Assembly: GCF_001194135.2 (NCBI RefSeq)
Contig: NC_068998.1
Coordinates: forward strand, 24,917,765-24,977,371
DNA length: 59,607 bases
Direction of reading: 5' to 3'
Origin: Octopus bimaculoides
Taxonomy: Eukaryota
Part shown: positions 8,091 to 59,607 of the stretch, in pieces
How positions within the stretch are numbered: the stretch's first letter is position 1
Layout: each line of letters begins with the position of its first letter
Notes under the pieces: generated by a model
Databases searched by the model: none
What the model saw: only the letters and a program-made list of their open reading frames with translations
Told to the model about the DNA's origin: nothing
Position numbers and translations under genes: made by a program

Positions 8091-9339
8091 TCAGGTCATC
8101 TCATAAGCCCAGTCCAAAGTTTGAATAAAGAAAACAAGTGATCAAATGTTATATTTAATTGAAATTTAATCATAAATGTACTTTCCCTGATTATCTATGA
8201 CTTCCTTCCATCTATTTACAAGCTTTTTAATACCATCAATGTAAAACTCTTTTGGTTTCAAGGTGAAGAACTCTGAAATGTCAGTTTCGACCTCCTCCTG
8301 ACTTGCGAAAGTTATGTCCCCCAAATGAATCTGTAAACTACGAAACAAATGGTAGTCTGAAGGAGCAAGTTCGGCAGAATAAGGTGGATGAGGAATTTTT
8401 TCTCAACCAAGCTATTCGATCTTCTGTAATGTGATCTTTGCAGTGTGAGGTCGCGCATTGTCCTGTTGAAACGCCACTCCTTTTCGATTCATTAAAGCGG
8501 GTCATTTTTTTGTTCAAAGCTTGGTTCAAGTGCTCTTATTGCTGACAGTAGACTTGAGCATTGATCGTTGCATTAGGTGGTAACAATTCAATCCCACGAG
8601 ATAGAGAGAAGAAGCTTTTTTCCCATGAAATTCCCTTCTCGGTTGTAGTTGAGCTTTTCCCTTTTACCAAGCCACTGTTTACGACGTTTAACATTTTGAT
8701 AGAAGATCCATTTTTCGTCACCAGTCACAAGTCTATCCAAAAAGGGTGATATGAGTTCGCGAGAATGGAGAGAAGAGCAGATGTCAACTCGGGATTTGCG
8801 GTTGCTTTCGGACAATTCATGAGGCACCCATTTTCCAAGTTTAGGAACCTTTCCAAGTTGATGAAGATGACAATGAATAGTTGTATGGTCTGAACTAAGG
8901 TTTATTGCCAATTCTTCGAGTGATAATGCAGGATTTTCTTCAAGTAATGCCTCAATGAACTTACCATCAAACTCAACTGGACGTCCTGTTCGATCTTCAT
9001 CTTCAAGGCTGAAGTCTCCACTTCTGCAAGTTCTTTGATTGAAGCATTCTTTCCCATAAATTGAGTGTCTGTTTCGAGTCGCTTCGGCTGCAGGATTTCC
9101 TATTTTTGTACTCATAAAATATTATGTGCCTCAATTGCTCTTTGGATACTTCCATGTAAGAAAGGATTTTAATCAAAGAAATTTTAATTCTATTATTCTG
9201 TAAAATAATATTTAATTAGTTTAAATGTACACAAATGCATAAAAATAATTTTTAATTCCATTAGAAATTCTAAAATACTATTAAATTTCATTCAGTTTTA
9301 AAATAGGTAAAATCGGACAGAACTTATGGGCAGACCTGA
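8091..9339 (-). mobile_element. Full-length mariner (DD34D) transposon, ~1.25 kb, inactive
   Basis: TA-flanked imperfect TIRs (TCAGGTCATCTCATAAG at the left; reverse complement TCAGGTCTGCCCATAAG at the right) enclose a transposase pseudogene. Confidence 0.92.
8166..9155 (-). pseudogene. Mariner transposase pseudogene
   Basis: MEVSKEQLRHIIFYEY..., DEDRTGRP, GKWVPHELS, LVTGDEKW, IPHPPYSAELAPSDYHLFRSL, NRWKEVIDNQGKYIYD*. Broken by frameshifts and stops. Confidence 0.92.
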
Positions 9340-22875: not shown

Positions 22876-22889
22876 AAACGGATCGTGTC

Positions 22890-22920
<31 letters not shown>

Positions 22921-23526
22921 NNNNNNNNNNNNNNNNNNNNNNNNNNNNNNNNNNNNNNNNNNNNNNNNNNNNNNNNNNNNNNNNNNNNNNNNNNNNNNNN
23001 NNNNNNNNNNNNNNNNNNNNNNNNNNNNNNNNNNNNNNNNNNNNNNNNNNNNNNNNNNNNNNNNNNNNNNNNNNNNNNNNNNNNNNNNNNNNNNNNNNNN
23101 NNNNNNNNNNNNNNNNNNNNNNNNNNNNNNNNNNNNNNNNNNNNNNNNNNNNNNNNNNNNNNNNNNNNNNNNNNNNNNNNNNNNNNNNNNNNNNNNNNNN
23201 NNNNNNNNNNNNNNNNNNNNNNNNNNNNNNNNNNNNNNNNNNNNNNNNNNNNNNNNNNNNNNNNNNNNNNNNNNNNNNNNNNNNNNNNNNNNNNNNNNNN
23301 NNNNNNNNNNNNNNNNNNNNNNNNNNNNNNNNNNNNNNNNNNNNNNNNNNNNNNNNNNNNNNNNNNNNNNNNNNNNNNNNNNNNNNNNNNNNNNNNNNNN
23401 NNNNNNNNNNNNNNNNNNNNNNNNNNNNNNNNNNNNNNNNNNNNNNNNNNNNNNNNNNNNNNNNNNNNNNNNNNNNNNNNNNNNNNNNNNNNNNNNNNNN
23501 NNNNNNNNNNNNNNNNNNNNNNNNNN

Positions 23527-24030
23527 CTCTCGAATCGCCGTGTTGAACATAGACTTCCGCGTTGACCGTTTGGTTCCGTTCAAGCAATTCGCAATGGATA
23601 ATTCCTTCCCAGTCCCACCATACGCACAACATCGTTTTACGCGAATGAAGGTCTTGTTTCACGCGCGGTGTCGCTTGTTTACTAGGGCCAAGCCATTCGT
23701 TACGCTGCTTCATATTGATGTACAGGCATCATTTTTCGTCGTCAGTAACGATTCGGTAAATAAATCGTTGCTTGTGTCCATGAGTTGAGCGGTGACTAGC
23801 AAGCAAACCAGCGGAGATTGTGGCTCGTTGATTTTTGTTGTTGTCACTTAAAGCAAGCGGAAACCATGCTCCATGCTTCTGAACCTCTCCCATTGGATGA
23901 AGATGCTTCTCTATAGCGGTGTAGGAGCATTCCATTTTCTCTGCCAAACTGTCGTTTGACGAGAATTTTCGTGCAAAAGTTAGTTTAATCGCTTTATATG
24001 TAGCTCAACTGGAGGCCAGAACGAAGGAAA
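23527..24030 (-). mobile_element. Mariner transposase internal fragment from a second family
   Basis: LAEKMECSYTAIEKHLH...GAWFPLALS...RIVTDDEK...RKTMLCVWWDWEGIIHCELLERNQTVNAEVY. Bounded by a gap on one side and a MITE on the other. Confidence 0.88.
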
Positions 24031-32229: not shown

Positions 32230-32277
<48 letters not shown>

Positions 32278-32416
32278 GCATATATACATACACACAGACA
32301 GACACACACNNNNNNNNNNNNNNNNNNNNNNNNNNNNNNNNNNNNNNNNNNNNNNNNNNNNNNNNNNNNNNNNNNNNNNNNNNNNNNNNNNNNNNNNNNN
32401 NNNNNNNNNNNNNNNN

Positions 32417-34986: not shown

Positions 34987-35599
34987 CGTGATCGTAATTG
35001 TTTATTTTTCAAATAAACACACGCACTATACATTCTTCTTCACTCCTTTATTCCTGTTCTTATTTTATTATGTTAATTGATGTCCATTGTCCGCAAATCT
35101 TTCGTCACACATCTGTGACCTTTTCAGTGACTCTTTTCGTTTTCATTTGTGTTCTTGCTCCACTTTTCCATTCGAAGATGTGTATCCTTATATTTGCATG
35201 CGTTTGTGTCCTTGTTTGAGTTTGTGTGTCCGCGCGTATATATGCTTGTGTGCTTGTCATATTCATTAGCACACTGTGGCCTTCCTCTCAGTCCCATCCT
35301 CTCACATCATTCTACTGCTGCTCTCCTAAGACCCTATAACAAATATTACAGTTCCTGTATTGTTCTGTGCATGTGTTTCCCCACGGTGTTGCAATCGTGG
35401 TAGTTGTTATTGCCATCGTTATCACCACTGCTGCTGCTGACGTTGTTAGTTGTGTTATTGACATTGTGTGTGTTTGTGTGTGTGCATGTGTTCGCTTCGT
35501 ATGTTGTACTATGCGATACTCTTTATATAGGTGTTTTTATTAATTTTATTTTATCTATCACTATGTCTTATATATGACAGATGTATTTATATATTTATT

Positions 35600-35765
35600 A
35601 TTTATATATTTATATATTCATACGTGACAGATATATTTATATATTTGTCTATTTATATATTTATATATTCATACGTGACAGATATATTTATATATTTGTC
35701 TATTTATATATTTATATATTCATACGTGACAGATATATTTATATATTTGTCTATTTATATATTTA
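35600..35765. repeat. 51-bp minisatellite, 3 exact copies
   Basis: TACGTGACAG recurs at 35621, 35672 and 35723 with identical intervening sequence. Confidence 0.92.
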
Positions 35766-35946
35766 TTTACTTTTTATTTTGTTTTTATACATCTATCTCT
35801 GGAGGAGATGTCCTCCTGAGGCTAAAAGCAACAGTAACATCCACCCCTAGGGGTCAGCCACATTTAAGTGGCAATATACTTCACTTTATCGTGCAGTTAC
35901 TGTTAATACCTAATTTAGAGAATTAACATTGCTTGTNNNNNNNNNN

Positions 35947-35992
<46 letters not shown>

Positions 35993-37419
35993 GGTTGTCA
36001 AGTCCTTATGCAGAGTTTGACTACCTTTTGTACCTACACCTTAGGAACATCCATCATGGCATCTGATGTGGCTTTTTATATTACCAGTAGTTGATGTAAG
36101 TCAGCGTTTTCAAGTACTGTCAAAGTATATTCAAGCCTATGATGAAAAAACATCGCAGTAAATATAATTAATTATTGTGTCTACGGATTTATGCAAACCC
36201 GTACATATAATAATTAGCCTGGAGTGTTACGTGAAAATTTAGAAAAATAATCCCATAATAGTCTGAATATGCGTATGATATATTTTAGCTGATAACTATA
36301 TGGAGTAAAACATTCAGAAATCATTCAGAATGTATTCAAGTTCGTACGGCATCTTTTTATTCTGACAATATAGCCATTTCCCTATTCAAGGATTAAACAT
36401 AGAAATTTAAGTTGTTTCACTCAAATACAATACAACATCCATTTATACGATTCATTGTGGTTTTATATTAATTTTAATTTTAATGTTTCTTCGAATAATC
36501 ATTATCTATTATTATTCTACGTTGCAGAACAAATTAAAATGTACTCCCCTACACATGCTCAAATATCCTCGTTGCATAACAACGAAATTTTGTAAAACTA
36601 CTTTCAGGGTCTTAAGTTCCAAGTATTATATATATTTTTAGTATGATATTCATAAGCATTCTTTATTCTAAACCTTAGTTACCTATAATAGATTTATAAC
36701 ATAAAAGTAGCAGAACATCAAAATATTTTACTACAATTATGTCATTTATTTTCAGCTGTAGTTTTCTCATTTTTTATTGTGAATACGATATTATCAGCCT
36801 TACAACATTTTACTATGTTACTATTTTAACGACACTGAAAATTTTCCTGAGCCTCCACATTAGATAGCGTTATGTTTAATTGGGGTTTCTTCAAAATTTT
36901 CTTACTGCCTACAATGTAGAATTTTGAAATTATTTCAATTTTATTATTTTTAATTTATTTCCTGAATACTTTTATTTCAGCAATATTTGGATTTTATATA
37001 TATATATATATATATATATGAAGTATAAAGAAAGAAAACATTGTAGGGGTAGACGAATTTTTATTCATAATGTTGCAATATAATTCTCCAAATTGTTTAG
37101 GAATGTAATTAATTCCAAAGACAAAATCGAAAGACTCTTCTTGAAATAAAAATCAGATTATTCATCAGGAATTACATACTGATATGAATAATGACCAACA
37201 AAAATATACAAAGACCTTTCATAGCCTAGACGAGAACGAACAGAAAATCTCCACCTACAATGTTTCCTTTCCTTATATTTCATTTACTGTTTTTGCAAAT
37301 ACTGAATATATACTTTTTTATATAGAGTCTTTACTTGGACTGTAACGGCTGACTTGGATGTTTGACATCTCTTTGAAGGATTTCAGTCCTCACCTCTTAT
37401 ATATATATATATATATATA

Positions 37420-37775
37420 TATAAATTTAAATAAGGGTGAAAAATTGAGTATTAACTTAATTAATATCAATTTAAAAGCAGTGACCTAGCATATTGAAAA
37501 TTCTGAAGATTCAGAAAAATTACATTACATACATATAATATGGATAACCACTAAGTGGACATTCATTATGCTAGAAGAAGAACACCTATGGTCTGACCAC
37601 TAAGAAGAGAATGTTCTCAAGAAAATTCAGCAAACACCAGAACGTAAGCGAGCAAGACAAATGTAACGATACAAAATATATAGATTAATCACAGACCGGT
37701 TTCGTTGTTACCACTTACGTAATTGTCCGCAACTCTTCAGTGTGATCGTCTTAGTGGTCCCTTAGTGGTCATCCC
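37420..37775 (-). mobile_element. HHR-headed non-coding unit (~350 nt), retrozyme-like or Penelope pseudo-LTR-like
   Basis: Lies between (AT)n tracts, has no ORF and carries the HHR near its 5' end. ACCACTAAG occurs at ~37547 and ~37597 and twice in reverse at 37750-37770. Boundaries are approximate. Confidence 0.45.
37688..37746 (-). ncRNA. Minimal type I hammerhead ribozyme with an intact catalytic core
   Basis: Minus strand: ATCACA-CTGAAGA-GTTG-(22 nt)-CAAC-GAAA-C-CG-G-TC-TGTGAT. All core nucleotides are present, stems I and II pair, stem III is the palindrome ACCGGT, and the GUC cleavage site lies between 37694 and 37693. Confidence 0.82.
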
Positions 37776-37778
37776 TAT

Positions 37779-37829
<51 letters not shown>

Positions 37830-37839
37830 NNNNNNNNNN

Positions 37840-38576
37840 TGATGGTGGAGTATATAGAGTCCTTACTTGATTTTCTAAAATGCACCATTAATGTTCAATG
37901 ATATTAAGATCTGGGAACTGTGGTGGCGAGATAAGATGTTCAACTTCACTAGAATGTTCCTCGTGTCATTCAGTAACAACTTTAGCTCTGTGAATTTGTG
38001 CATTATCATCCCGAAAGATTGCATTCTCCTCCGGAAACAGTTCCCAACCATAGGATGTATTTCATTAGATAAAATGCTTAAATAGTCTTGACTATTAATC
38101 CTGCCATGAAGGGAAACTATCGGACCGGCGGATTTCCAAAATATACCCACCAGATTATCACAGATCCTCCTCCGTGTTTAACAGTTGGAAGAAGGCAGTC
38201 TGGGTCAAATGCTTCTTTGGGTTGTATCAACACCTATACTCGGCCGCTTGTTGGAAATAAGGTAAAGGATGACTCGTCCGAGAAAATAACATTCTTCCAC
38301 TGATCTAGGAAAAAATTCTGTAAGTTTCTATTCCACTCTAAAAGCTTTGTAATATTTGTTTTTGAAAGTAGGGGTTTTCTGATTGCAGCCCTCCCGTGAA
38401 ATCCTCCTTTGTGCAGCTCCCAGCGAACAGTTTTTGTGGAAACTGGGTTATCGAGGTGGTCATCAAGCTCTGCAGTAATTTTGGGAGCTGTACTTTTATG
38501 ATCCTTTCTAACAATTCGCGTAAGTGTCCGACGGTCCATATCTGAAAGTTTAGGTTTTCTTCCGGAGTTTTGTTTC
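37840..38576 (-). mobile_element. Tc1-family (DD34E) transposase fragment
   Basis: KPLLSKTN, WKNVIFSDESSF, TVKHGGGSVIIW, DNAQIHRAKVV, PPQFPDLNIIEH. Frameshifted, with both ends lost in gaps. Confidence 0.9.
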
Positions 38577-39151
38577 NNNNNNNNNNNNNNNNNNNNNNNN
38601 NNNNNNNNNNNNNNNNNNNNNNNNNNNNNNNNNNNNNNNNNNNNNNNNNNNNNNNNNNNNNNNNNNNNNNNNNNNNNNNNNNNNNNNNNNNNNNNNNNNN
38701 NNNNNNNNNNNNNNNNNNNNNNNNNNNNNNNNNNNNNNNNNNNNNNNNNNNNNNNNNNNNNNNNNNNNNNNNNNNNNNNNNNNNNNNNNNNNNNNNNNNN
38801 NNNNNNNNNNNNNNNNNNNNNNNNNNNNNNNNNNNNNNNNNNNNNNNNNNNNNNNNNNNNNNNNNNNNNNNNNNNNNNNNNNNNNNNNNNNNNNNNNNNN
38901 NNNNNNNNNNNNNNNNNNNNNNNNNNNNNNNNNNNNNNNNNNNNNNNNNNNNNNNNNNNNNNNNNNNNNNNNNNNNNNNNNNNNNNNNNNNNNNNNNNNN
39001 NNNNNNNNNNNNNNNNNNNNNNNNNNNNNNNNNNNNNNNNNNNNNNNNNNNNNNNNNNNNNNNNNNNNNNNNNNNNNNNNNNNNNNNNNNNNNNNNNNNN
39101 NNNNNNNNNNNNNNNNNNNNNNNNNNNNNNNNNNNNNNNNNNNNNNNNNNN

Positions 39152-39190
<39 letters not shown>

Positions 39191-40934
39191 TATTCTGTAA
39201 GATCTATCATGTTCCGTTTATACCATTTATATTGCAAATGCTGATTTTCTCAATATATCATTATACTGGACCCTGATATAATGCAGAAATGGTGGACGAG
39301 GAGAGACAGGCACTGATTTTATGACTATCATAGAACTTAGCTTCAAACAGCAGTTGTTGTAGAGATACACTGCTTGCTTTGAAAGTTTGACTATACTTAC
39401 CAATATCACTACATAATTCTCACATCTTTGATACGGTGAAATGCTTTATTAAAGTTAATGTCATTACCTGAATGTCTCTAACTTTTAGGTAGATAAATGT
39501 TGATGATATTGTAACATCAAAATAATATTTACTGTATGAAGATTCCCTCACTACAAGTTCGCACATGGGTTCAACTGAATTGCACAAACTCATCTTTCTT
39601 ACTTTAGCGCTGTACTATTATGCAAGTGAATGAATATCCATGAGAGATGTTAAAAAGTATGGTCATTATCATACTTTTGCAGCAATTTCTTCTAAAAAGA
39701 GTAGCGTAGCGCAGTGTACTAACGAAAATAGATAAAACAGCTTATAAAATTTTCCTTATGCAATCTTCCAATCTCGCGAGTAGATTCAAAACGAAAAGCT
39801 TTTTCTTTTATTTTCTTCTTATTTTCATTAAGGCAATGTATGATGACTAAAGCATAGTAAATATAAAACATATCTTAGATATTTTTGCCCCGTAAGTCTT
39901 TTGTAATAAAGATAGTATAAACATGAAATAATCTCAAATGAGGAAAAAATAGCAATATTATGTTAGCACGCCTTTGGATGGTATCATCATTTGGTAACGA
40001 AAGCGTCTAACGGTAGATTGAGCCCTAGAAAGTGGGAAATATAAAGACTTGGATAATTATAGTTATAATTACTTTCGAACTGTACATGTGTAAGTGATAA
40101 AAGGTGTTACATATTAGTGCAAACACGGGGAATGAAGAAACATTGTTCAATATATTGAAATGATCTCATTCTATGAACTTTACCTTACAATTAAATACGT
40201 GTTCATCATATACCATTCTTGTTATAATTAAAATAATTTGCAGCCAATACTATATAGTATCAAGTAATGCTGTTTACCGATATACAATAACAGATAATCA
40301 GCAAACTCATTTTCCGATAGAAATAAAATAATACTTTGTCTTGCCTGTTTTAAAAGAAATTGAAAATCAATACTATCAATATTAATGAAATTTCAATTAG
40401 AACCTTTATTTCACCATATAAATACCTATTTTAGATAATCAGAGCTTAGTCTTGCATTATGTTGTCAGGATAATCGTATTTTATCGGTTACGTTAGTGTT
40501 ATCACACGGCATTACCTCTAGCATCAATGACCTCGAGCATAAACTGAGTTTACGTCATACTTTAAATTATAATTTGGCATTCAAAGAATGATTTATTTTA
40601 CGATTGTCAGCAGAAATAATTTAGTGGCAGTACAACAACAGGATTGCTTATGTGTCAAATTATTATGACAGATAATAATTTTTAGCTAAACGTCAATATG
40701 TATTCTGTTACATATATTCCTATGTTTTGAAAACAAATATTTTGATTTCAATTCAATATAAGCAACTACTTGTAGGCATATGAACAATTGAATGTTGCGA
40801 AGAGACGACAGCTGGCTCAGTTTCGCGCAGTAAATATTCGATTGTTACAATATTTTATTCATATTAGAATAGATAAAAGAACAAAAGAAAACAAAAGTAA
40901 TCATACGTAAATATATACATACATTCATACATTC

Positions 40935-44468: not shown

Positions 44469-44504
<36 letters not shown>

Positions 44505-49211: not shown

Positions 49212-50663
49212 TTAAATCTTCAAAGCCACCACTGGTGGCAACTCGTCAAACCGAACCTCTATCGGCGTTATTTCTATCATATCTCCAAATAGTTCCTTCA
49301 ACTTCACTCCCCTCTCTTTCTCAAACAAGACTGTTTTCAAGCCTTCGTTCTACTCATTCGCCGCTAATTTAACCCTAATTACATGTTTCATCTTGGTGAT
49401 TTTCTTCACAATTTTGATGCAATTTTCATATTTTATCATATACCGTGTTTCCTTTTCTGTACTCCTTCCTGTCTCCCGTTATTAGTTTCCTCGGGTATGG
49501 GTATCTCTTTCTTCTCTGTTTCTTTCTCGCTCGATGTTGTTGCCATCCCCTTTTTTCTTCCTCTGTTTTCTGCTTCTTCACTCTCTACTCCGTGCTAGTT
49601 ACTGGTATCGATATCTGTTTTCTCTTTGTATATTTCTCACTTGACGTTGTTGGCATCTCCGTTCTTTCTTCCATTCTTTTCTGCACGTTCGCTTTCTTCT
49701 CCCTTGGTATACCTGGTCTCACACAATAAGTCTCCTTTACGGTTTTCTTTCTTTTCTTCATCGGACTCTTACGTGGTGAGTTCGCGTTTCCCTCACTCTT
49801 TCTCTTCACCACTGTGTACCTTTCTTTCACATCTTCAACTTTCTTTTCGTCTACTGGCCTCTGCTTCTCTGCGTTTTGCACCTATTCTTCTCCTTGCTGC
49901 CTCTTGCTCCATCACCTCCTCATCGTGTTTCTGGGAACACTTAGCTTTCATGTGTCCACGTACTCAACGCCGGTAGCAGATGGGAGGTCTTCCCTCCACT
50001 ACCACTCTTAGTTTCACCTCCTCGGTTAACACGACCACTTTTATGTAGGTCCGGTAAACTGATTTGGACCGTCACCTCAAGGCTGTATCCCCAACAGTTT
50101 ACCTCTGTTATTCTTGTGACTTTCAGAATTTTCGTTTCTTCCTCCGTGTTGTAGAGGATGGCTGCCACCAGCCACACCTCGTCAATCTCCCGAGGCACTC
50201 TACCAATCCTAACTCTGGCCGCACGTTTGCCACAGCAGGTTGGCAGTAGCATCCACTCTGCCGACATCAATGGCACAGTTGAGTGTTTCATCGCTTCTTG
50301 TTGGCTCGCGAAAAGAACCTCCGCTGTGTCATACTTCTTGTCTCTAGTATAGAATGTCGTGAGGTTTTTAATGTCCGCTAGGCAATCTTCTACTGCTTCC
50401 GCTGTAGTTATTTCTATCATTCTGGTTCCTGTGGACATCGTTCTAAATATCACTTTCAGTTTAATTGTCTTCTCTGTCAGTTGGTTCGACGGGGTCAACC
50501 TCAGGATGTCAACTTCCTTTGCTATAAGTTCGTTGAACTTCTTCAATTTCTTTTCTTCTATTTTAACTTCTCTCACTTGTAATATATCAGCAGGTAATCG
50601 TTTTCCAGTGGCTGCAGCATAACTACCAACTGGAACTGGTTGGCTCTCGATCGTTTCACCCAT
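49212..50663 (-). pseudogene. LINE ORF1/gag-like nucleic-acid-binding protein pseudogene (L1/Tx1-like organisation)
   Basis: A 240-aa open frame with RRM-like content, then after a frameshift VVVEGRPPICYRR*VRGHMKAKC (damaged CX2CX4HX4C knuckle) and a K/E/R-rich tail ending at TAA 49212-49214. Confidence 0.7.
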
Positions 50664-57974: not shown

Positions 57975-59607
57975 ATTTATTTATTTATTTATTTATTTAT
58001 TTATGGGTTTCAGCCAAGTGGCTGCGGCCATGCTGGAGCACCACTGTGATGTTCTGTCTTTATGCTTTGCTCTCTTCACGTTCCTTGCTTGGCTCTTCTC
58101 CTGCACCTGATATAGTCCAATCAAGTCTTTTGATGGCACATCTGGTGTATAAGAGAATTTGACATCGCTGCCCTAAACTGTGTCTCATTTCGAGCCATTG
58201 GTTCGTCTGGTATCGTGGAGAGGAAAGCGTCGAGTTTTGTCTTGAAGACCTCCACATCCGTGTCTTGCAGGTCTCTCAAATGTTTTGGCAGGGCATTGAA
58301 GAGCTGAGGTCCTCTGAAACCGAGGCTGCTGCAGTATCTTGTTCTTATGTGAGATGCAGTGGACGGCACTTTTGGCACCATGCAGTGGTGACCCGTGCGG
58401 GCATTCCTGTAATACTTGATGCCAAAGTTTGGCATCAGTCCTTCCAGTATTTTCCATATATATATTATTACATATCTCTCCCGCCTGCGTTCCAGGGAGT
58501 AGAGACCTAGTGCCTGCAGTCGCTCCCTGTAGTTCATTTGCTGGACTGTGGCGACCTTTTTTGTATAGTGCCGCTGAATTGCCTCGAGTTCTGTTGTCCG
58601 TTTGACAATGTGTGGTGACCACAACTTCGAGCAATAGTCTAGGCGGCTCAGGACAAATGTCTTCCATAGAGTCAACATGACTTTTTGATCCCTTGTACGG
58701 AATGTCCTCAGTATCCACCCCGCCAGCTGTCTGCACTTTGCTGTCAACTTGACAATGTGCATGTGAAATGATGCATCACTACACATGTTGATGCCCAGGT
58801 CTCTCACGGCTTGTGGTTCTGGGATTGCAGTACCTCCAGGTCCTGTGTATGCCAGTTGGGAGGCACGTGTGGCCTTGTAGAGCAGTACTTGAACATTTTC
58901 CGCATTGAACAGCATATTATTTTGCTCTGCCCACTCATATATTGCATTTAGGTCATTCTGTAGGCTTACAATATCATCAGGATTCTTTATTGCCTGAGAT
59001 AGTTTTGTGTCATCAGCGTAGCTAGTGACAGTGGCTCTCCGAGTGACCGTCGGCATGTCCAGAAGGGCCACTATGAACAGTAGTGACCCCAGGACAGTTC
59101 CTTGCAGAACACCGCTCAATATTTGTGTTTCCCTAGATAGTTCTCCATTGGCTGCAACTGTCTGACTTCTACCATTCAGGAAGTCATGCAGCCATCCTCC
59201 TAATTTACCAGTTATGGCAAGGTTTCGCAGCTTGTGACATATCAAGCCATGATCGACTTTGTCAAAGACTTTTGCAAAGTCGAGATATATCACATCAACA
59301 TTTGAATGGTCAAGTAGCTGCTTCAGACCCAGTCATAATGCTGCAAGAGTTGCGTGAGGCAGCTTCTACCTGGACGTAAACCATGCTGGGTCTCATTCAG
59401 CAAGTAATTTTCTTCTAGGAACGCAATCAATCTCTTTCTGACAACTCGTTCCATGACTTTGTTAATATGTGAAGTCAGAGAGATGGGCCTGTAGTTCCCA
59501 GCCTCTGCTCTGCTTACGCCTTTATGGATAGGACATATGGTGCCTTCCTTCAGCTTTTTGGGAAGTTTACCATTTGCAAGGAAACTCTGGAAGAGTATCC
59601 GGAGTGG
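57975..59607 (-). mobile_element. Young CR1-group LINE, 3' part, with 3' UTR and (ATAA)n tail; runs off the window end
   Basis: NYRPISLTS, QHGLRPGRSCLTQLL, IYLDFAKVFDKVDH, SGVLQGTVLGSLLF, YADDTK, VRDLG, YSLERRRERY. 3' stem-loop CAGCC-ACTT-GGCTG, then (ATAA)n at 57975-58005. Confidence 0.93.
58121..59607 (-). pseudogene. ORF2 reverse transcriptase of the CR1-group LINE, with one frameshift near 59330
   Basis: The 390-aa open frame 58121-59293 continues upstream in another frame (HYDWV/LKQLLDHSNVDVIYLD), indicating a 1-bp deletion. Confidence 0.9.

Follow-up and report, generated by a model that had tools for sequence, protein, structure and literature searches.

A complete type I hammerhead ribozyme motif was located on the minus strand of a small foldback unit, which lies between two (TA)n microsatellites and directly downstream of a degraded Tc1-like transposase gene on the same strand. 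The window, that is, the whole 59.6-kb stretch of DNA that was analysed, belongs to a gapped draft animal scaffold with 12 N runs and 34.6% GC, and it is very rich in microsatellites and transposon remnants. The features of the locus are the following.

37398-37423, no strand assigned: (TA)13 microsatellite, the left flank.
37424-37525, minus strand: 102-nt stretch separating the foldback from the left (TA)n, with small hairpins of its own and no pairing with the 265-nt core.
37526-37790, minus strand: foldback unit enclosing the hammerhead, 265 nt, 37% GC, folding more stably than shuffles.
37526-37555, no strand assigned: left arm of the terminal inverted repeat, TACATACATATAATATGGATAACCACTAAG on the plus strand, pairing with 37761-37790.
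37547-37604, plus strand: two copies of ACCACTAAG (37547-37555 and 37596-37604) with a 38-nt side hairpin between them.
37687-37747, minus strand: complete type I hammerhead motif, 61 nt, read directly and the sole descriptor match in the window.
37750-37770, minus strand: two adjoining copies of GACCACTAAG (37770-37761 and 37759-37750), directly 5' of helix I.
37761-37790, no strand assigned: right arm of the terminal inverted repeat, CTTAGTGGTCATCCCTATTATATGTGTATA on the plus strand, 30 nt, 87% complementary to 37526-37555.
37779-37829, no strand assigned: (TA)25 microsatellite, the right flank, followed by a 10-N assembly gap (37830-37839).
37840-38576, minus strand: degraded Tc1-like transposase gene (HTH_Tnp_Tc3_2 and DDE_3), which is not part of the hammerhead unit.

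In minus-strand order the motif reads GAUCACA-CUGAAGA-GUUG-[22 nt]-CAAC-GAAA-CCGG-U-C-UGUGAUU (37747-37687), and it is made up of the following parts, all on the minus strand.

37741-37747: helix I, 5' strand GAUCACA, pairing with UGUGAUU at 37693-37687.
37734-37740: core C3-A9, CUGAAGA, read directly.
37704-37733: helix II, GUUG (37733-37730) with CAAC (37707-37704), 4 bp including G10.1-C11.1, enclosing the 22-nt loop 2.
37708-37729: loop 2, 22 nt.
37700-37703: core G12 A13 A14 and A15.1, GAAA, read directly.
37695-37700: palindromic helix III, ACCGGU, read directly; it matches the feature described in PMC4209133 and PMC7229834.
37693-37694: predicted cleavage site between C17 (37694) and N1.1 (37693), placed by standard hammerhead numbering.
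37687-37693: 3' strand of helix I, UGUGAUU, giving 7 bp, the outermost a G.U (37747/37687).

The catalytic core was complete, comprising C3 U4 G5 A6 N7 G8 A9 with A as N7, G12 A13 A14, the A15.1-U16.1 pair and C17 as H17. Three helices were arranged round this core with the end of helix I open and G10.1-C11.1 closing helix II, which is the type I topology. C15.2-G16.2 was also present, with CCGG at 37699-37696 and U16.1 at 37695, and in the monomer helix III amounts to the single A15.1-U16.1 pair closing the palindromic tetraloop CCGG. In the predicted fold, loop 2 holds AUUAC-GUAA-GUGGU (37723-37710), a 5-bp hairpin in which GUAA forms a GNRA tetraloop. At 22 nt this loop is unusually long, and loop-loop tertiary contacts cannot be shown for the motif.

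These results upheld most of what the original prediction, made from the letters alone, had said about the motif. Its claim of an intact core was borne out, since CUGAAGA, GAAA, A15.1/U16.1 and C17 were all read on the minus strand, and the cut site at 37693/37694 was the same in both readings. Stem III was confirmed as the palindrome ACCGGU, which forms 1 bp as a monomer and its 6-bp helix only between two copies; the statement that type I hammerheads with such a helix III occur in Penelope-like elements (PLEs) and non-LTR retrozymes also agrees with the literature (PMC4209133, PMC7229834). Two details were revised. The length given for stem I (6-7 bp) stood, but its span fell short by one base on each side, where the seventh pair, the G.U of 37747/37687, is located. 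Stem II (GUUG/CAAC around a 22-nt loop) was likewise recovered, whereas its loop, described before as simply containing a palindrome, proved to hold the AUUAC/GUGGU hairpin with its GUAA cap.

The chance expectation of the motif was estimated with our own type I descriptor, which required a helix I of at least 5 bp, a helix II of at least 3 bp, CUGANGA, GAAA, A15.1/U16.1 and H17. Exactly one match, the motif at 37747-37687, was found on both strands of the 59.6-kb window, and the descriptor also recovered the probable PLE hammerhead of the control locus L012, on a contig unrelated to the window. Applied to 48 Mb simulated by a first-order Markov model with the composition of the window, it gave 13 matches, corresponding to 0.015 per window or ~270 per Gb, so that a scan of many windows would meet loose matches. 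A chance match in AT-rich junk DNA, without ribozyme ancestry, would also be in keeping with the single copy in the window, the absence of homologues from the collections searched, the lack of an Rfam match and a local fold of the hammerhead segment no better than that of shuffles (z = -0.32). The motif exceeds the loose descriptor, however, by its 7-bp helix I, the G10.1-C11.1 pair, the 4-bp helix II and the palindromic helix III tetraloop. A stricter descriptor (helix I of at least 6 bp, helix II of at least 4 bp, G10.1-C11.1) found no match in the 48 Mb of simulated sequence; scaled by pair probabilities, it would be expected ~2e-4 times per window, and when palindromic loop 3 is required as well the expectation would fall to ~1e-6 or less per window, or ~0.01-0.1 per Gb. 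In addition, the motif lies within a structured repeat at a PLE-type target site and not in anonymous sequence. We thus consider a chance origin improbable, even allowing for a genome-wide scan.

The Rfam Hammerhead_1 check that had been proposed with the original prediction was run and did not turn out in its favour: Rfam 15 reported no hammerhead family, either at the gathering score or, in a 501-nt search, at E<=10. The probable PLE hammerhead of L012 was missed by Rfam at E<=10 as well, so the negative result says little for minimal hammerheads. Rfam covariance models appear not to cover this minimal class, and scans that use such models alone would under-report it, since both the motif and the probable PLE control escape them. 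The control itself (L012 16111-16152, minus strand) is a textbook PLE minimal hammerhead on an invertebrate contig from a metagenome assembly. It reads UGCC-CUGAUGA-A-GAACGG-UUUCAC-CCGUUC-GAAA-UA-UC-GGCA, with a 4-bp helix I, a bulged A, a 6-bp helix II and a palindromic AUAU helix III. About 190 nt upstream of it lies a GIY-YIG-like ORF (L012 16339-16614, minus strand; IYMINCKRC...CIGQTGRTLRERFGEH), whose match to Pfam GIY-YIG (E = 0.054) was below the cut-off.

The unit that carries the hammerhead was delimited by its structure. The boundaries first proposed for it, 37420-37775, are merely those of the two microsatellites, and the structured unit spans 37526-37790; its description as free of ORFs held, as no ORF >43 aa overlaps it. 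With a size of 265-355 nt and a GC content of 34-37%, the unit falls within the published retrozyme ranges. Its MITE-like inverted termini had gone unmentioned in the original prediction. ACCACTAAG was present in four copies, two per orientation, and within the window these occur only inside the foldback unit; a 14-mer search of the window gave 3 matches, all within the unit, against 0.15 expected. The adjoining stretch at 37424-37525 had no match elsewhere in the window and may either extend the element at its 3' end or be target sequence that predates it. The plus strand of the unit contains no hammerhead core. An inverted duplication with a decayed second hammerhead was considered for the unit and rejected, because similarity is limited to the outermost 30-42 nt and no alignment was obtained between the interiors. 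A tRNA-like or SINE head was also sought in the unit, and neither such a head nor Pol III features were found.

Folding of the 265-nt unit gave an MFE of -85.4 kcal/mol for the hammerhead strand (z = -5.4 against shuffles) and -65.8 kcal/mol for the plus strand (z = -4.0), while the inner 143 nt alone gave z = -1.3, which is not significant. The foldback is carried by its ends and is not a viroid-like rod. The hammerhead strand was ~20 kcal/mol more stable than its complement and contained 13 G.U pairs compared with 4 A.C mismatches (binomial p = 0.049); this excess of G.U is a weak hint of RNA-level constraint on the hammerhead strand. Within a 63-nt segment the hammerhead fold reached -8.5 kcal/mol against an MFE of -12.1 kcal/mol, so the hammerhead is not the minimum, and the most stable predicted fold of the unit would sequester it in the foldback.

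Much of this structure could also be expected of a TA-targeting Tc1/mariner-type MITE, in which the hammerhead would have been captured from a retroelement or would be the MITE's own, and the ACCACTAAG copies would be transposase binding sites. The 30-nt terminal inverted repeat (87%), the subterminal 9-mer repeated twice per orientation and confined to the unit, and the strong foldback on both strands with its signal from the termini all point in this direction. So do the TA that abuts both termini, TA being the Tc1/mariner target, the Tc1-like element in the same microsatellite block and the annotation of MITEs in Octopus vulgaris. Such an origin nevertheless leaves unexplained a complete hammerhead with an animal-specific palindromic helix III, for which chance would account at ~1e-4 or less per window. 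The TA flanks are uninformative as a target-site duplication because the unit lies inside a (TA)n tract, and flanking inverted repeats are produced by PLE insertions too (PMC8557442). MITEs are moreover multicopy, with precise TIR-to-TIR boundaries, and share their termini with an autonomous transposon, whereas the unit is single-copy in the window and its termini bear no resemblance to the TIR of the Tc1 family next to it. We consider a MITE origin unlikely. A literature search found no report of a MITE carrying a hammerhead, the papers returned having matched on co-occurring terms only.

The Tc1-like gene is disrupted by two frameshifts and by three stop codons in frame. Both of its ends fall in assembly gaps, the N-terminal part in one of 575 N (38577-39151) and the 3' end in that of 10 N (37830-37839). 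Compared with an ENA metagenome contig (L001), it showed 89.6% DNA identity and 80% amino acid identity. This relative and a second one (L002) end in a 30-bp TIR (CAGGGGTTGGACAAAATAATGGAAACACC) placed directly on (TA)n, and this TIR is unrelated to the hammerhead unit. We considered and rejected the unit as the 3' end of the Tc1-like transposon, since both relatives terminate in their own TIR without similarity to the unit; full Tc1 relatives carry nothing like it, which indicates that the hammerhead is not part of the Tc1 element. It seems that the Tc1-like element and the hammerhead unit were inserted into the same (TA)n tract. The left flank at 37150-37397 was tried as a continuation of the Tc1 gene and was dismissed, as its alignment was no better than that of shuffles.

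Several further repeats were observed around the unit and across the window. A direct repeat matching at 18 of 19 positions (CAAGTAARGACTCTATATA, minus-strand reading) occurs at 37849-37867 and 37315-37333; the pair brackets the gap, the (TA)n, the hammerhead unit, the second (TA)n and 64 nt, its first copy lies inside the Tc1 ORF, and the sequence on either side of the repeats is not what a simple target-site duplication would leave. To the left of the unit, beside a (TA)12 at 36995-37019, a 39-nt inverted repeat (84.6%; 37015-37053 and 37248-37286) is possibly another small foldback element. A 51-bp AT-rich tandem repeat (35575-35766, 3.8 copies, 97% identity) lies within a spurious 131-aa ORF. 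A 110-bp repeat (49494-49702, 1.9 copies, 75%) adjoins a 240-aa ORF (49941-50663, minus strand), which matched no Pfam family, has no identical entry in the protein collection and possibly encodes a gag-like protein or the ORF1 of a retroelement. Mariner-like transposase remnants (Pfam Transposase_1) were detected at 8184-9115 and 22889-23713, both on the minus strand, the latter broken by a 606-N gap. A LINE (CR1/Jockey-like) RT ORF of 390 aa (Pfam RVT_1) occupies 58121-59293 on the minus strand and continues towards 59607; its best match, on an ENA contig, had 69% identity, and its best named match was an Argonauta hians protein (59%). This named match is the one clue to the organism and points to an octopod as the probable source; it led us to abandon a penaeid shrimp, a guess prompted by the abundance of microsatellites. 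Tracts of (TA)n adjoin many of the assembly gaps (for example 22890-22920, 32233-32290, 35947-35989, 37779-37829, 39152-39193 and 44469-44501), which suggests that the assembly was broken by long TA microsatellites and by what had inserted into them.

Relatives of the unit were sought inside and outside the window. The 59.6 kb contained no second copy of the non-TA part of the unit and, on both strands, no second hammerhead, and TRF detected no tandem repeat at the locus except (TA)n. No PLE RT or GIY-YIG ORF was present among the selected window ORFs scanned with Pfam. A six-frame pseudo-protein of the unit returned nothing at E<=10 from 5.8 billion proteins. Among sampled invertebrate loci totalling 130 kb, neither BLASTN nor the descriptor detected anything related to the unit, and a pattern scan of viral and prokaryote genome contigs gave 0 matches. 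Five matches to the pattern in JGI metagenome contigs were discarded as chance matches, all of them being GC-rich and without helices. In the literature searched, we found no description of the hammerhead content of octopod genomes.

The best explanation of these results is a genuine metazoan type I hammerhead within a solitary relic, either of a PLE terminus (pLTR) or of a retrozyme monomer, inserted in (TA)n in what is probably an octopod genome. We give this reading a probability of about 0.55. The flanking (TA)13 and (TA)25 and the 30-nt inverted termini are as in PLE insertions, and they are also compatible with a MITE. Retrozymes consist of head-to-tail repeats of ~150-450 bp with a hammerhead in each, and the locus has one unit and one hammerhead. 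The non-coding nature of retrozymes, their GC content of <45% and their lack of LTR, PBS and PPT were all found in the unit as well. Since dispersed retrozyme monomers exist, the lone unit is compatible with derivation from a retrozyme.

For such a relic, the following course of events, established for relatives, can be proposed. The fragment would be a heavily 5'-truncated PLE terminus (pLTR) or the monomer 'offspring' of a PLE-dependent non-LTR retrozyme. Transcripts of tandem copies would carry one hammerhead per unit. With helix III too short to act alone, the ACCGGU of two copies would pair into a 6-bp intermolecular helix and form a double hammerhead, and each ribozyme would then cut 3' of C17, here between 37694 and 37693. 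The resulting unit-length RNAs, which would end in a 5'-OH and a 2',3'-cyclic phosphate, might be ligated into circles. A PLE RT with its GIY-YIG endonuclease would copy the RNA back into DNA, preferring microsatellites, and such insertion may often leave 5'-truncated copies together with inverted partial copies, which would give the flanking inverted repeats. The copy at this locus would at best be a substrate for trans-dimerisation with transcripts from other copies.

A working retrozyme monomer, transcribed, self-cleaving and yielding a linear or circular RNA of ~265-355 nt, would likewise show an intact hammerhead core, and the size, GC content and lack of ORFs of the unit fit non-LTR retrozymes (PMC7229834); over the whole unit the RNA of the hammerhead strand is highly self-paired, mostly by its terminal inverted repeat. 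One cut, however, cannot release a unit-length RNA, and the single hammerhead has no tandem copy or partner within 59.6 kb. Single motifs with a 1-bp helix III cleave not at all or very little (PMC4209133, PMC7229834), so that a partner copy would be needed, and monomers are regarded as non-transposing offspring (bioRxiv 10.64898/2026.07.22.740005). With one hammerhead, no cis partner and a 1-bp helix III, cleavage in cis and a circle from this locus are unlikely, and we regard a working monomer as very improbable; the 10-N gap at 37830-37839 leaves room for a collapsed tandem array at the locus. Of the self-cleaving non-coding retroelement monomer originally predicted, the motif, the non-coding character, the size and the (TA)n site therefore stand, while no tandem arrangement was found in the 59.6 kb and a ~350-nt circle is unlikely. 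The locus copy is most likely an inert, dead-end relic and not a source of circular RNA. It shows no evident function of its own.

A hammerhead integral to a TIR-bounded, TA-targeting MITE, or an undescribed cephalopod retrozyme family whose RNA rod derives from transposon-like inverted termini, is in our estimate quite unlikely. If either of these two were true, hammerheads would be tied to a route of mobilisation that differs from the known one of PLEs and retrozymes. If the family of the unit is multicopy, a cephalopod lineage would be added to the animals with type I hammerheads in PLE-related repeats, and the unit would be a seed sequence for tandem, possibly circle-producing arrays elsewhere in the genome. 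Octopod genomes are rich in repeats and contain Penelope families that were active recently; ~30 Penelope families as well as MITEs have been annotated in Octopus vulgaris (PMC13282606).

Among known systems, Tc1/mariner MITEs resemble the unit in being small and AT-rich, with TIRs, repeated subterminal motifs, TA flanks and foldback potential. The unit termini are unrelated to the TIR of the adjacent Tc1 family. The Schistosoma Sm-alpha/SINE-like hammerhead repeats are also short, non-coding and dispersed, with a type I hammerhead, but the tRNA-like and Pol III features were not found here.

According to Cervera and de la Pena (PMC4209133), canonical metazoan type I hammerheads act as dimers and have 6 bp in helix I, 4 bp in helix II and 1-2 bp in helix III, which is capped by a palindromic loop of 2-4 nt. 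Non-LTR retrozymes are ~150-450-bp tandem repeats of <45% GC that give self-paired circular RNAs (PMC7229834), and 6% cleavage after 1 h was measured for a monomer from axolotl with a helix III like the one described here (PMC7229834). A 2026 preprint shows that monomers of retrozyme families, viewed as offspring that do not transpose, occur dispersed, and that these families have a relationship with PLE termini (bioRxiv 10.64898/2026.07.22.740005). Like the metazoan retrozyme and satellite hammerheads (newt satellite 2, axolotl HHR_Amex1, coral and mussel; PMC7229834), the motif is of type I with a helix I of 6-7 bp, a 4-bp helix II with G10.1-C11.1 and a one-pair helix III with a palindromic tetraloop, which implies cleavage as a dimer. 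The host unit is likewise a few hundred nt long, <45% GC and non-coding, and its self-pairing is mostly that of the terminal inverted repeat. It differs from metazoan retrozymes in being present as one copy and not as a tandem array, in having 30-nt inverted termini, and in the 22-nt loop 2 with its hairpin, where theirs is short and takes part in conserved loop1-loop2 contacts.

Arkhipova and colleagues (PMC8557442) name as hallmarks of PLEs a preference for (TA)n targets, copies severely truncated at the 5' end, hammerheads close to the 3' end and flanking inverted repeats created by an adjoining truncated copy in inverse orientation. Most PLE-associated minimal hammerheads in invertebrate genomes are single dispersed motifs from truncated elements (PMC4209133), and single minimal motifs showed no detectable cleavage in vitro (PMC4209133). 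Typical PLE minimal hammerheads have a helix I of 4-5 bp, a helix II of 6-8 bp and a bulge after A9, as in L012; the motif described here has the opposite helix proportions and no bulge. With the minimal hammerheads of PLE pLTRs (PMC4209133, PMC8557442) it shares the palindromic 15.2-16.2/loop 3 and the conserved G10.1-C11.1, as well as the insertion in (TA)n, where inverted partial copies of PLEs give rise to flanking inverted repeats.
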